Assembly (NCBI GenBank): GCA_024137785.1
Contig: JAHRHZ010000028.1
Location: forward strand, 27,693,847-27,738,448
Direction: 5' to 3'
DNA from: Ginglymostoma cirratum
Lineage: Eukaryota
Length of the DNA stretch: 44,602 nt
The translations under genes were made by a program, and so were the position numbers. A model generated the notes under the pieces. That model did no database searches. It had not been told where the DNA came from and worked only from the letters and a program-made list of their open reading frames with translations. Shown here one piece after another: positions 990 to 36,579 of this stretch; position 1 is the stretch's first letter, and the number at the start of each line of letters is the position of its first letter.

Positions 990-1026
990 CTTAGTCTTTC
1001 CTTGTCCTTAGTATAACCCTTTCGAC
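990..1026 (-). CDS. Gene A exon 3: 37-nt stalk exon (SRKGYTKDKERL+AG)
   Basis: Acceptor cattttgaacag, donor AAG|gtaaat, open in phase 1 to phase 2. Same length, splice sites and relative position as the gene B exon at 35919-35955. Confidence 0.8.
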
Positions 1027-1337
1027 CTGTTCAAAATGATGTATGAAAATATTATTTGATCATTCATTAGCCTCATGTTAACTGTGTCAAGGTAGATGTA
1101 CAAGGTACAATGAATGAAATTTTGATTAGAACAATCAAGAAGCGGTACGTGGTTTTACAATGCTGTCCTGTTTGACTCTTAACTAAATTATAATTCTCAT
1201 ACTTTACTGAGAAAGCAGTGTCCCAGAGATTTTGAAAATACGTAACAAATATATATACACATCAAATTATGTGAACCTGTATTGAACACGAAAATATCAC
1301 TGAAAATGCAGCAAATAAACATATATTTATGCCTTAC

Positions 1338-1673
1338 TTTCATGAACTTTAAGTAGTATGGGAGTTAGTGGATCCAGAAGGTGAGGTCTCTCTATTCCAC
1401 ACCAGTACCATCCCTTATCATTTTCTGTCATCTGGGTCATATGTACTGTAAGTTGTCCTTTTGCATTATCAGCTGTAATTTTTATTCGGCCATCGTGACT
1501 TTTCCTTTCAGGGCCACTGGTTTGTACTAAAACATTACAGCTTCTCCTGTAGTAGCCTTTGCACCAGTATTTCTGATAATTTCTAAAATATGTGTCAAAT
1601 CTGCATTCGATTTTGACTGATCCTCCCGTTTGTGCAGATTTTTCTTCTGGTCCACTAATTGAAGCGTGCGTAA
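1338..1673 (-). CDS. Gene A exon 2: Ig V-set domain, CD300 (CMRF35-like)/pIgR-like
   Basis: 336-nt phase1/phase1 exon with acceptor ttttcacatttacag and donor gtaagg. Protein shows GGSVKIEC...KYWCKG-x5-C...DKGWYWCGI: canonical B/F cysteines, C-strand Trp and the extra C-C' disulfide typical of CD300/pIgR/TREM V domains. Confidence 0.93.
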
Positions 1674-2619
1674 CTGTAAATGTGAAAACATATGAAAATT
1701 TAAAACATATTATTTTATGTTTCAGAGACAAAAGGACATTAACATTGATGTTCTCTTCTCTCTTGTGTTCCACACTATTTTTCTGTGACCTCTTTCTCTT
1801 TGTCAGCTTTCCTCTCCTTAATTCTTAGTGGTTGCCCTCCTCATTATTCTTTTTGTTCACTGGCTCCCCTCTTGTTACAATATTTCCTAATGTAACTATA
1901 TGTCTGTTAGTTTGTTGCTTTCGTATTTTTAGTCACAAGTGCGCTGCAAAACCAAAAATGACCAAGATTAACAAATGGATTTAGGCCAGGTAGAAGACAC
2001 CAGGTTGGGAAAGAAAACTTTCAGAAAGGTTCCAACTTGCACATAGATTTCTTAGAAACTGGGGTAAGGGCCAAGTCAGAATTTATGAGGACAGATTTGA
2101 CTACGACATCCAATATCATGCTCTAAGACTAATTGAAGTTGAAGGGTCTAGAGTTGTGAACATGTCCCACACTGACATACGCAACATAGTTGGGTGCGAC
2201 CTAAACAGAGAACATAAATTTGGGCACAGGAGTGTAAGGCTGGACTGTATTACAGTAAACCCATGTATTTTGAGAATGGGACAAGGCATTGGAAAAGTGG
2301 CGAGAGCATAAAGTTTGTCCGCAGGGTTAATGGAAGAGTTATCGTGATAGAGAAAAATTCTGAGTGAAATGGGTGTATCATTGGGTGCATGATAGCTCCT
2401 CAACGTGAGAGCTAAAATGGAGCATATGTTTGTGAGAAAAGCTATGTTCCTCCATTAGTATTGATCCTGCTGTTTCTTTAGTAAAATTTTGAAATGTACC
2501 GATAGCAGCAAACCAAATGGCCCCAAAATATAATGAGTTCATCCTCTTCACCTCCCAAATCTTTATCTCCAATCCACTGTCACATTAGACTTACAATGTG
2601 AGGTTTTGGTATCTTCACT

Positions 2620-3620
2620 AAATCATAGAGTGCATTGCTCAAAAGGAGGCCACTTGGCTCATTACTTCCCTGCTGGACCCATGCAGAGCAACTCCACTCT
2701 TACTCCCTTGCACTTGTCTCATAGCCTAGCAATTTATTTCTTTTCAGGTAATGATCTTTGGAAATGCTATGAACGAACCTGCCTGTTCTATGTTCTCACA
2801 CAGTGCATTCCACGTTCTGACCACTTGAGCTGTAAAACAGTTTTACATCAAGTCTACCTTTGGTTCTTTTGCCATTCACATTAAATTGATGCTTTATGGC
2901 TCTCAATCTTGTGCCAATGTATGCAGTTTCTCTGTATCTATAGCATTAACATCCCTCATGATTTTGAATATCTCTTTCTAATCTCTTCTCAAGCTCCCTA
3001 AAAGGGACTAGCACCAACATGTCCAAATTACAGTTATTCTTGCAAATTTTCTCTGCACCGTATCTAACATCTTTGCAACCTTCCTAAAGTGAGGTGCCCA
3101 GAATTGTACATGATACTCCAATTGATTTTCAACTAATGTTTTATAAATGGTTCACTACCATTTCCTTGCTTTTAGTATACTATTTAATATATATATAAAG
3201 CCAAGGATTCTGAAACATCTATTAATCAGTTCCACAACTTATCCTGCCATAGTCAACAATTGTCTGTGCGGTCTTCATACCAAAACAAATCTCTTCACAC
3301 TTTTCTGCAGTAAATTTTAGATGCCACCTGTTCTGCTCATTCCATTGTGAATACCTTCTTGATCTCTGTCACTATCCTTTTCACAATTCCGAATAATTTG
3401 TGTCATCTGCACATTTCGAAATTGTGCCCTGTATGCCCATGACCTAATCCTTAACATGGATCAAGAACAGCAGTGATCCTAGTGAGTAGCAATGAGGAAC
3501 CCTGGTGTTTAATTGCCTGCAGCCTGAGAAGCAACTGTTCACCAGTCACACTGCTGTGTACCATATCACTCAACTATGCAGTACCTATGTTGCCAAACTG
3601 TCTTTCATTTCATGGGCCTT
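2620..3620 (-). mobile_element. Old CR1 LINE remnant in gene A intron 1, shared with gene B intron
   Basis: CR1-like motifs (ccttcctaaagtgaggtgcccagaattgtaca; tgtgtcatctgcacattt, FADD region antisense). Colinear with 37290-38560. Confidence 0.65.
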
Positions 3621-3809
3621 ATCTTTGCAGGCAAGCTGGTGTGTGGCTGAGATGTAATTGAGAAGGTGTGTTGCAGCAGCACAAAAGCTTCAGATGAGTA
3701 GAAGGGTAGAACTGAAGTCATTTTACTGTGAAGAAGGAAGTGGCACTGAACAGCGGATGCAGAATTTGGTGGAAGAGATGGAACAGAGACACCTCGAGAA
3801 TGAGTGAAT

Positions 3810-4023
3810 ATATCTGAAAGAACGGTGGATGCTGTAAATCAGGAACAAAAACAGAAGATGCTGGAAAAGCTCAGCAGGTCTGGCAACATCTGCGAAGAAA
3901 AATCAGAGTTAATGCTTCAGGTGCTGAGGAAGTGTCACTGGACCCAAAACATTAACTTTGATTTTCTTTGCAGGTGTTGCCAGACCTGTTGAGCTTTTCT
4001 AGCAACTTCTGTTTTTGTTCTAA
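3810..4023. mobile_element. Palindromic Penelope-derived non-autonomous element (family 1) with 11-bp TSD
   Basis: Long internal inverted repeat; flanked by AATGAGTGAAT at 3799-3809 and 4024-4034; absent at the paralogous site near 38725. Confidence 0.75.
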
Positions 4024-34445: not shown

Positions 34446-34639
34446 CAGGAATCTCATTCACATGTGAAAACAAGCGTTCCATGTTGAAGTAGAACAAACC
34501 CCCATGAATCTGACTCCCGAAGTTTCAAACACAATGTTACGTTGGTTCTGACGCTAGAGTGACAGTCATTCTATAGCATCAACATTCCTCATTTTGGGAA
34601 AGCAATCATTGGAACTCTGGCAGGCAGACGCAAAATAGG

Positions 34640-35835
34640 ATACTGTACAGTAGATAAAGGCAATGCATTTGATATAGTCCATTTGAATTTCAACAAGATT
34701 TTTGATAAGGTTCCACAAAGAAGATTGATAACTAAATCAGATCACACAAGATTTAAGGAAATTTGGCTTGTTGGGCCCAGAATGGGCTGAGTAGCAGGAA
34801 GCAGAGGGTGATGGTCTAGTAATGTTTTTGTGACTGGATGCTTGTGGCCAGCAGGGATCAGTGTTGGGAACCTTGCTGTTTGTGATTTATATAAATGATT
34901 TAGACATTAATGTAGGATAACTGATCAGTGAATTCAGAGATGATATGAAATTGGTGCAGTGGTAAGTAGTGAGGGGAATAGACTTAGATTACAGGAAGAT
35001 ATAAATGGATTGATAAGGGGCAAATGGAATTCAATCCGCGTAATTATGACGTGATGCACTTGGGCAGAACAAACATGGCAAGAGAATACATGTTGAACAG
35101 TAGGACCCTGGGAAGCACCAAGGATCAGAGGGACCTTGGTGTGCACATACATCAGTTCTCTAAGGTTCTGGAGAGGTGGATAAAGTGGTTAAAAAGCTGT
35201 ATGCGATACTTCTCTTTATTAACCGAGGCACAGAGTTTAAAAGCAAGGAGGTTATGCTGGAAATGGATTAAATGTTGGTTAGGCCACAGCTACAGTATTG
35301 TGTGCCATTCCAGAACCAACATAATAGGGGGACTGTGATAGCACTGGAGATGGTGCAAAGGAGATTTTACAAGATGTTGCATGGTCTGGAGAATTTCAGT
35401 TATGAAGAGAGATTGGACAGACTAGGATTGTTTTCCTTTCAGTAGAGAAGGCAGAGAGGTTCATGATTGAGATGTATAAAATTACGTGGAGCATAGATAC
35501 AGAACACAGGGAACAACCTTTCTCCTTGGTGGAGAGATCAATGACCAGGGAGCATAGATTTAAGAGGAGGGGCAGGAGGTTTACAGGGGGTGTGAGGATA
35601 ACCTTTTCACCCAGAGGGTGGTGGGAATCTGGAACTCCCTGCCTGTGAGGGTGGTAGAGGGAGAAACCCCTATAACATTTAAGAAACATTTAGATGTGCA
35701 CTTGCAATGCTAAGGTATGAAAGACTATGGGCCAAGTGCTGAAAAATGGGGCTGAAATGGTTAAGTGTTTGTTTTTGACCAGTGCAGACTTGATGGGCTA
35801 AAGTACCTTTTTCCGAGCTTTGGATCTCTATGACT
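34640..35835 (+). mobile_element. Degraded CR1 LINE RT/3' fragment in gene B stalk-TM intron
   Basis: ttttgataaggttccaca, tttatataaatgatttaga, ggttaggccacagct, tatgaagagagattggacagactagg; tail ctctatgactc. Confidence 0.85.
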
Positions 35836-35918
35836 CCCTGATACCTCTCATTATTCCAGTAGTACAGAAATAAAACAAATGCTTAAAGCACACCTGTTCA
35901 AATACATTTGATATTTAC

Positions 35919-35955
35919 CTTTGTTTCTCCTCATCATTTGGAAATATCTTTCGAT
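35919..35955 (-). CDS. Gene B 37-nt stalk exon (NRKIFPNDEEKQ+AG)
   Basis: Acceptor aattttgaacag, donor AAG|gtaaat. Phase 1 in and phase 2 out bridges the V exon and TM exon exactly. Confidence 0.82.
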
Positions 35956-36243
35956 CTGTTCAAAATTATAAGTAAAGTTATTATTTGAAAGTGCATTAGC
36001 CTCATGTTATAGCTTTGTAATAAACCATGAAGTTGAATTGGCTGTGTTTACTGAGATAAAAATGAAATGCTGATTCGATAGAAAAACTAAAGAGCAACAA
36101 ATTGCTTTTAACTATTACTCTAGTTTACAATATTATAGTTTTAACACATTACTGAAAAGTCAGGATCTTATATCAACTCATTATCGAACAAAAATACATT
36201 ATTGAAAAGTAAACAGACTTGTTAGCATATACTTATGCCTTAC

Positions 36244-36579
36244 TTTCATGAACTTTAAGTAGTATGGGAGTCAGTGGATCCAGATGGTGACGTCTCTTTA
36301 TTCCACACCAGTACCATCCCTTATCATTTTCTGTTATCTGGTTCATATGTACTGTAAGTTGTCCTTTTGCATTATCAGCTGTAATTTTTATTCTGCCATC
36401 ATGACTTTTCCTTTCAGGGCCACTGGTTTGTACTAAAACATTACAGCTTCTCCTGTAGTAGCCTTTGCACCAGTATTTCTGATAATTTCTAAAATATGTG
36501 TCAAATCTGCATTCAATTTTGACTGATCCTCCCGTTTGTGCAGACTTTTCTTCTGGTCCACTAATTGAAGCATGCGTAA
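36244..36579 (-). CDS. Gene B V-domain exon, CD300/pIgR-like (paralog of 1338-1673)
   Basis: 336 nt, acceptor ttttatatttacag, donor gtaagg, open frame VTHASISGPEEK...KYWCKGYYRRSC...GWYWCGIKRRHHLDPLTPILLKVHE. 11 nt differences from gene A by hand count. Confidence 0.93.

Follow-up and report, generated by a model that had tools for sequence, protein, structure and literature searches.

Why do two receptor genes that have diverged along most of their length carry almost the same ligand-binding exon? The question is raised by a stretch of 44,602 nucleotides (nt) of Ginglymostoma cirratum DNA (assembly GCA_024137785.1, contig JAHRHZ010000028.1, positions 27,693,847 to 27,738,448 of the forward strand), which is called the window here and is numbered from its first letter. 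The window contains two genes and repeats. Gene B lies upstream on the minus strand and gene A downstream of it on the same strand, in tandem, with their V exons about 34.9 kb apart. Both genes are members of the shark CD300/CMRF35-like molecule (CLM) receptor family. The near-identity of their V exons is very probably the result of V-exon-centred gene conversion in an old activating/inhibitory CD300-like pair.

A homogenised tract on two diverged genes

The V exons of genes A and B differ at 11 of 336 sites (96.7% nucleotide and 95.5% amino-acid identity), six of the differences being synonymous and five being replacements. These are exactly the counts given in the original prediction, a note made from the letters of the window, and its count for the adjacent stalk exons, 13 of 37 nt differing (65% identity), was reproduced as well. 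Around these exons the genes share a colinear scaffold (A 966-5121, B 35895-40988) of ten blocks in the same order and on the same strand, with 66-89% identity outside the tract described below. Each gene has an insertion that is absent from the other: a repeat in the leader-V intron of gene A, whose RNA word depth is very high, as is typical of multi-copy elements, and a block of foldback repeats in the corresponding intron of gene B (Table 1). The earlier description of introns that are much more diverged than the V exons and carry copy-specific insertions holds.

Self-comparison placed the block of high similarity at A 1320-1845 and B 36226-36756, and a change-point fit was used to find its limits. 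In the outer tract, A 1320-1791, 32 of 474 columns differ (6.8%), against 329 of 619 (53%) outside it (twice the log-likelihood difference, 2dlnL, 297). Within it lies a core, 1327-1681, where 11 of 355 columns differ against 21 of 119 in the rest of the tract (2dlnL 25). The longest run of identical letters has 113 nt, against a background divergence of about 30%, and the identity of the tract is far beyond chance. On the downstream side, high identity ends just past the V donor, as had been claimed: 17 of the first 18 nt are identical, after which identity drops to about 66% with insertions and deletions, and the V-stalk intron is 63-66% identical. On the upstream side, the extended similarity that had been described is present, but its gradual decay is not, since the drop to about 80% is immediate at the acceptor and identity then runs at 67-90% for about 170 nt (80% over the first 172 nt; 30-nt bins of 80, 77, 87, 90, 67 and 73%). 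Beyond about 1850 the two genes cannot be aligned.

The silent sites of the V exon are less diverged than the introns. By the Nei-Gojobori method the synonymous divergence (dS) is 0.093, the nonsynonymous divergence (dN) 0.019 and their ratio, omega, 0.20, and only 1 of 38 fourfold sites differs; the introns differ at 27-36% of sites, a level to which dS is not similar. Divergence at synonymous sites is below that of both the V-stalk intron (Fisher p 5e-6) and the intron blocks that align best (p 5e-4). A highly identical patch that lies between homologous but diverged sequences, together with silent divergence below the intron level, is the pattern of gene conversion.

V domains group by species

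The V domains of this family were compared across sharks as protein sequences. In addition to the A/B pair at 95.5% amino-acid identity, the inhibitory and activating copies of zebra shark are 97.3% identical and two bamboo shark paralogues 91.0% identical; between these species the V domains are 74-88% identical. A maximum-likelihood tree of V domains pairs the copies by species (supports 81/86, 100/99 and 97/94). Approximately unbiased (AU) tests reject a single clade of the three non-inhibitory V domains (log-likelihood difference, dlnL, 91), a grouping of gene B with the zebra shark activating V (dlnL 55), and a single clade of the four orectolobiform inhibitory V domains (dlnL 90). V domains thus do not group by orthology at the protein level. 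Across sharks, transmembrane exons fall together by gene type and V domains by species. Together with the low divergence at silent sites and in the flanks, and with the limits of the patch on both sides, this supports the idea in the original prediction that gene conversion took place between old paralogs.

The extent of the shared stretch varies between species. The zebra shark stretch takes in the stalk, where the two genes do not differ at all; that of G. cirratum stops 18 nt past the V exon; and that of bamboo shark is restricted to roughly the C-terminal three quarters of the V domain. Since the limits of the tract differ by species, they point to independent conversion events. In the tree, the orectolobiform activating V nests within the elasmobranch inhibitory V clade, and the Mustelus activating and chimaera-type V domains fall outside it (support 93/91, not starred). 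This nesting suggests that the direction of conversion was from inhibitory to activating.

Some of the annotated proteins used here are mis-modelled. The zebra shark "pIgR-like" protein P0003 (638 residues) fuses the inhibitory CLM1 gene to an adjacent ITIM receptor (ITIM, immunoreceptor tyrosine-based inhibitory motif) that has two V domains, and the C-terminus of bamboo shark P0002 matches a repeat, found in the window at 7260-7298. Automated gene models of the CLM family are therefore unreliable at their ends, as this fused protein and this repeat-derived C-terminus illustrate.

Replacement changes fall in the FG loop

All five replacements between A and B (T79N, M81I, E94K, P96R and L98H, written from A to B) lie within codons 79-98, a clustering with p of about 0.003. 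The predicted model places residues 94, 96 and 98 where strand F ends and in the FG loop, which corresponds to the third complementarity-determining region (CDR3-like). Inhibitory orthologues keep GI[E/D]R.HLLD at this position, and gene A has GIERPHLLDP. Gene B carries K94, R96 and H98, and the zebra shark activating copy N94, I98 and K99; the zebra shark pair differs in V only at the FG loop. In both species the activating copy has lost the acidic residue 94 (E to K in G. cirratum, D to N in zebra shark). Gene B would have gained three basic residues in or beside the FG loop since the last homogenisation.

An activating and a probable inhibitory receptor

The family assignment is carried by the V domain, which matches Pfam V-set (E 1.8e-14). 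Among solved structures, its sequence matches CLM-1/CD300f (E 2.8e-21), CD300a (E 3.5e-16) and the domains of pIgR (E about 1e-10). The AlphaFold2 model of the gene A V domain has a predicted local distance difference test score (pLDDT) of 92.6, with strands at residues 10-14, 19-25, 33-38, 46-51, 63-68, 73-78, 87-94 and 102-110. The top Foldseek matches of this model are CD300lf/CLM-1, with template modelling (TM) scores of 0.89-0.93 and a root-mean-square deviation of about 1 Å. Cysteines C23, C37, C45 and C91 are invariant in 20 homologues. Both V copies contain KYWCKGYYRRSC, and both have the cysteines of the canonical B-F disulfide and of the extra C-C' disulfide (K-Y-W-C ... C). The architecture seen is leader, V and stalk, spliced, for gene A, and V, stalk and transmembrane exon for gene B.

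The stalk exon of gene B ends in phase 2, which fits the transmembrane exon at 31776-31681. That exon ends the protein as WNILRW...KVKI*, so that a charged residue in the membrane span and a short tail, WNILRWAFFVILLLCAILIKVKI and then a stop, are both present as in paired activating receptors. It matches zebra shark CMRF35-like molecule 3 isoform X1 (P0152) at 24 of 27 residues, and the zebra shark model joins V, stalk and arginine-bearing transmembrane segment directly. Judged by its predicted protein, gene B is of the activating type, with one V domain, a 12-residue stalk, an arginine-bearing transmembrane helix (N-I-L-R-W) and a 4-residue tail. It would presumably signal through an adaptor that has an acidic transmembrane residue and an ITAM (immunoreceptor tyrosine-based activation motif). 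The motif W-x-[IV]-L-R-W also occurs in Mustelus CLM2 (P0111) and in the chimaera-like protein P0139, whose V groups with Callorhinchus. It was observed as well in multi-domain pIgR-like proteins, for example from Narcine (proteins examined: P0003, P0002, P0057, P0159).

The exons of gene A resemble those of inhibitory receptors. Its start codon is an ATG at 6434, and its leader exon is internal, because an AG acceptor (6524-6523) precedes 6522. Sequence comparison showed that this leader resembles those of P0002, P0003 and P0161, and all 12 residues of the stalk are shared with the CLM stalks of zebra shark and whale shark. Compared with whale shark CLM1 (P0161), gene A is identical at 12 of 13 leader residues, at 88% of the V domain and at all 12 stalk residues. 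Beyond the stalk, whale shark CLM1 has an uncharged transmembrane segment followed by VTYAAV and TEYSTV. In the inhibitory CLM1 orthologues these motifs are an ITIM, VTYAxV, and TEYSTV, which is like an immunoreceptor tyrosine-based switch motif (ITSM), and 13 of the fetched elasmobranch proteins keep an uncharged segment with an ITIM/ITSM tail of this CLM1 type. A search of 1-989 for the transmembrane and tail exons of gene A did not find them there; they lie outside the window.

A hydrophobic open reading frame (ORF) on the minus strand at 89-182, MKASWPIVFMVLTAGLYLVIYTVVSLLFCRS, follows an AG acceptor and is followed by GTAAAA. It is out of phase with the gene A stalk exon and was rejected for this reason as the transmembrane exon. 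Spliced in the phase of the stalk, an exon at 182 gives arginine and a stop (...KERLR*), as in zebra shark isoform X2 (P0001). It may be an alternative exon for a soluble form, or may have arisen by chance.

Near-identical ectodomains in adjacent genes on the same strand are what is expected of paired receptors. The activating/inhibitory pairing put forward in the original prediction is seen directly for gene B, in its transmembrane arginine and 4-residue tail, and extends to gene A by orthology, through the leader, V and stalk that match ITIM/ITSM-bearing CLM1. We infer the adaptor use, the ligand, the tail of gene A and the direction of conversion.

Transcripts and the assembly

Reads and contigs were mapped to 560-6550, that is, to the gene A stretch, from four runs belonging to three studies in all. 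X21 is a raw poly(A) RNA run and X1, X4 and X8 are contig runs. Among the four, X21 is the one on record as RNA; the other three are taken to be transcript-derived because they show spliced joints. The joints 6395->1673 and 1338->1026 (GT..AG, minus strand) are present in 4 of 4 runs. The depth of X21 lies on exons and multi-copy repeats and is zero in unique intron bins. The X1 contig contains the gene A V exon with 0 mismatches and continues for 1219 more letters on its 3' side and 460 on its 5' side.

Letters typical of gene B at 1379, 1385 and 1392 are found in a separate X4 contig. The gene A contig of X8, which has the gene A leader and stalk, carries the gene B letter at 1609, meaning that at least one of the 11 differences is segregating, not fixed. 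Such a site is in keeping with the two V exons having had a recent common origin. Position 1366, at which the gene-B-type X4 contig is not flagged, is possibly another segregating site. Spliced contigs from independent runs give the gene A V exon at 0 mismatches with its own leader and stalk, which argues against assembly or polishing as the source of the similarity.

In the sense direction, one X4 contig runs from the end of a gene-B-type V exon through 353 letters that are off the mapped stretch to the gene A leader and then the gene A V exon. It is possibly a B-to-A read-through (conjoined) transcript, or a third paralogue. Read-through is possible because a GTGAGT donor at 31680 follows directly after the gene B transmembrane exon.

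The assembly has one gap of 400 N between the genes (Table 1). The gap overlaps no exon and neither tract, so the comparison of A with B is independent of it, and only the statement that the genes are in tandem, 34.9 kb apart and on the same strand depends on it. One edge, 16164-16203, is the reverse complement of the other, 16604-16643, and the two match the two arms of a foldback repeat, of which a complete copy lies at 39224-39441. Most simply, the gap is the unassembled centre of one foldback element, which supports the join. ORFs listed across the gap are artefacts.

Explanations for the shared V exon

The process that we think very probable would have been as follows. Two old gene scaffolds diverged, and non-allelic gene conversion copied a patch of about 0.47-0.53 kb between them, made up of the V exon with 18 nt of the intron downstream and about 120-170 nt of the intron upstream of it. 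We read the tract, of about 0.5 kb, as the product of one or a few conversion events. Copying of the patch would leave both receptors presenting nearly the same ligand-binding domain while delivering opposite signals, and the same process would have acted independently in related sharks with different tract limits.

If the genes were instead a recent whole-gene tandem duplication, the V exons would be alike because the copies are young, and the introns would only appear diverged through repeat turnover. The tandem arrangement on one strand and the young repeat copies in the window, at 94-98% identity, agree with this idea, which is nevertheless scarcely credible when the colinear intron blocks (66-89%) are set against the V exon (96.7%). 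The stalk exons differ at 35% of sites, the high identity is a patch between diverged homologous sequences, and gene B is older than the splits from zebra shark and Mustelus, whose transmembrane exons are orthologous to its own. Purifying selection could in principle keep an old V exon near-identical with no exchange of sequence, and the dN/dS of 0.20 and a low-divergence core that fits the exon within about 10 nt are in line with it. It seems very improbable as the whole explanation, given that conservation extends to silent sites (1 of 38 fourfold sites differing; dS 0.093) and that the non-coding flanks are at 80-94% identity. The V proteins of shark orthologues are 74-88% identical, which means that the domain is not that constrained, and the grouping by species is repeated in three species.

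An artefact, in which reads of one paralogue corrected the other or a duplicate was misplaced, is suggested by the 400-N gap between the copies and by the way the assembly breaks inside repeats. We give it next to no credence: the copies have different flanks and 11 specific differences, contigs from independent studies give the gene A V exon without mismatch and, separately, the gene B letters at 1379, 1385 and 1392, and the same near-identity is found in the zebra shark and bamboo shark assemblies. The alternative with most in its favour, although still unlikely, is that conversion is real and the genes are not an activating/inhibitory pair, gene A being a second activating or soluble form, or the two genes being one read-through unit. 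The tail of gene A is off the window, a contig joins a gene-B-type V end by way of 353 letters to the internal leader exon of gene A, and the phase-compatible exon at 182 gives ...ERLR and a stop like zebra shark isoform X2. Against this, the leader (12 of 13), the FG loop GIERPHLLDP and the stalk of gene A match inhibitory CLM1 orthologues across elasmobranchs, and the 1219 letters that the X1 contig has 3' of the V exon are enough for a long tail and untranslated region.

Several points weigh against V-exon-centred conversion in an activating/inhibitory pair. Gene A is the orthologue of inhibitory CMRF35-like molecule 1, and its inhibitory nature is taken from that orthology. The leader exon of gene B was not found in 36580-44602, the 8 kb upstream, by tblastn, pattern scan or sensitive blastn; the colinearity of the two genes ends at A 5121 and B 40988. 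The evidence from other species is at the protein level. The groups for the AU tests were fixed after the identity matrix had been seen, though they match a test stated beforehand. The bamboo shark pair was drawn from two different assemblies, and the type of its second paralogue is uncertain because its tail is mis-modelled. In the tract itself, synonymous sites (8.8%) compared with the immediate flank (about 18-20%, itself partly homogenised) give a borderline difference only (p about 0.05), and the core coincides with the V exon within about 10 nt. Much of the exon-restricted appearance may come from purifying selection that acts on replacement sites within a tract of about 470 bp, the exon being cleaner than its flank because replacement sites are constrained. 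A recent exon-limited event nested inside an older 470-bp one was considered for the same pattern and set aside as weakly supported: p is about 0.05 when synonymous sites are compared with the flank, and differences are found at 1 of 38 fourfold sites against 21 of 119 columns.

Gene conversion in this pair can be extended to a bolder proposal, which we hold only tentatively and would not expect to be right: that the activating/inhibitory CD300-like pair dates to the common ancestor of sharks and chimaeras and has been repeatedly re-synchronised by independent inhibitory-to-activating V conversions, with positions 94 and 98 escaping each time. A pair of this age is possible because the arginine-bearing transmembrane exon is found in Mustelus and in a chimaera-like protein. 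If the proposal is true, this would be the oldest known paired-receptor tuning of a ligand-binding loop in jawed vertebrates, and a natural experiment on the residues that set ligand affinity.

Features and repeats of the window

Table 1. Exons, homogenised tracts, copy-specific insertions and gap in the window (positions counted from its first letter).
Feature	Position	Strand	Description
Gene A leader exon	6395..6522	minus	Coding part 6434-6395, MSITVLLPIVFLS plus first base of a Val codon; phase 1
Gene A V exon	1338..1673	minus	336 nt; phase 1-1; AG and GT splice sites; CD300/pIgR-type V-set domain
Gene A stalk exon	990..1026	minus	37 nt; phase 1 to 2; encodes (S)RKGYTKDKERL(R)
Gene B V exon	36244..36579	minus	336 nt; phase 1-1; AG and GT splice sites; 11 differences from gene A V exon
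Gene B stalk exon	35919..35955	minus	37 nt; encodes (N)RKIFPNDEEKQ(R); AG/GT sites present
Gene B transmembrane exon	31681..31776	minus	Predicted (R)QNRWNILRWAFFVILLLCAILIKVKI then stop; arginine in membrane span, 4-residue tail
Homogenised tract, gene A copy	1320..1791		Core 1327-1681; weaker similarity on to about 1845; self-comparison and change-point fit
Homogenised tract, gene B copy	36226..36699		Self-comparison
Gene A-specific repeat insertion	3808..4018		Leader-V intron; holds dispersed repeat 3828-3915; absent from B
Gene B-specific foldback-repeat block	38788..39432		Corresponding intron; absent from A
Assembly gap	16204..16603		400 N; between genes, 9.7 kb upstream of gene A leader and 15.1 kb downstream of gene B transmembrane exon

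The foldback repeat family has copies at 38851-39094, 39224-39441, 28848-28937, 30866-31347 and 43891-44330. A 447-nt repeat (30901-31347 and 43891-44330, 96.6% identical) was considered as a third copy of the gene and rejected, being a multi-copy foldback repeat.

Between the genes lies the remnant of a retrotransposon of the long interspersed nuclear element (LINE) type, at 8574-12277 on the minus strand, with a predicted reverse transcriptase ORF at 9949-11325 (RVT_1, E 2.5e-29) and an endonuclease fragment at 11798-12277 (Exo_endo_phos_2, E 2.5e-07). Long imperfect arrays of low complexity, rich in GT and GA and built of units like GAGTGAGAGAGTG, occupy 21950-22460 and 24490-24660, also between genes.

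A dispersed repeat family is present at 4613-4937, 29079-29310, 31384-31573, 34173-34440 and 41186-41374. Its head, GGGCAGCATGGTGGCTCAGTGGTTAGC..., looks tRNA-like by eye; ARAGORN made zero tRNA calls across the window. The members of this family are about 80% alike, with very high RNA word depth, and the one in the gene A intron lies between the arms of an inverted repeat (4404-4612 and 5604-5812, 92%).

Comparison with known receptor systems

In Siglec-5/Siglec-14, SIRP, KIR and Ly49, the ligand-binding exon is kept near-identical by gene conversion between inhibitory and activating neighbours. These systems differ from the shark pair in belonging to other Ig families with other ligands.

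The direct orthologues of genes A and B are the zebra shark and whale shark CLM1 and CLM3 (XP_059509202.1, XP_059509194.1 and P0161), which are known from automated NCBI annotation. They come from other species, their V domains are 80-88% identical to those of the window, and in zebra shark the shared stretch includes the stalk. A literature search found no published analysis of these shark genes, which are known as automated annotations only. The original prediction of an uncharacterised shark paired-receptor cluster stands in so far as no paper was found, and has to be narrowed in view of the orthologues annotated automatically in other sharks, the MDIRs of skate and the published conversion of CD300A/C.

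The skate MDIRs are multigene families of activating and inhibitory receptors resembling CD300, TREM and pIgR, in the terms in which PMC3031540 cites them. As described there, they are like the shark genes in being multigene activating/inhibitory receptors of a cartilaginous fish with V domains that resemble those of CD300, TREM and pIgR. They differ in being modular and multi-domain, against a single V here, the comparison being one of descriptions.

The closest likeness in type is to primate CD300A/CD300C, in which gene conversion within lineages homogenises an Ig domain of about 112 residues and the signalling ends diverge (PMC12447643). As in the shark pair, a single CD300-type V is carried by an inhibitory (ITIM) partner and an activating partner with a charged transmembrane residue and a short tail, and copies are closer within a lineage than orthologues are between lineages (PMC12447643). 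One system is from mammals and the other from cartilaginous fish, and they are likened by type, not as orthologues. The charged residue differs as well: primate CD300C has a glutamic acid in its transmembrane region (PMC12447643), and shark gene B has the arginine of N-I-L-R-W. Compared with the primate study, the shark tract is mapped at the nucleotide level with its intron flanks. The mapped tract, the three species pairs with different limits, and loop residues 94, 96 and 98 make the tuning of ligand affinity testable in an early-branching vertebrate. Altogether this suggests that mammals are not alone in having activating and inhibitory receptors kept on one ligand by patchwise conversion, and that such conversion has recurred in cartilaginous fish on the same CD300-type fold.

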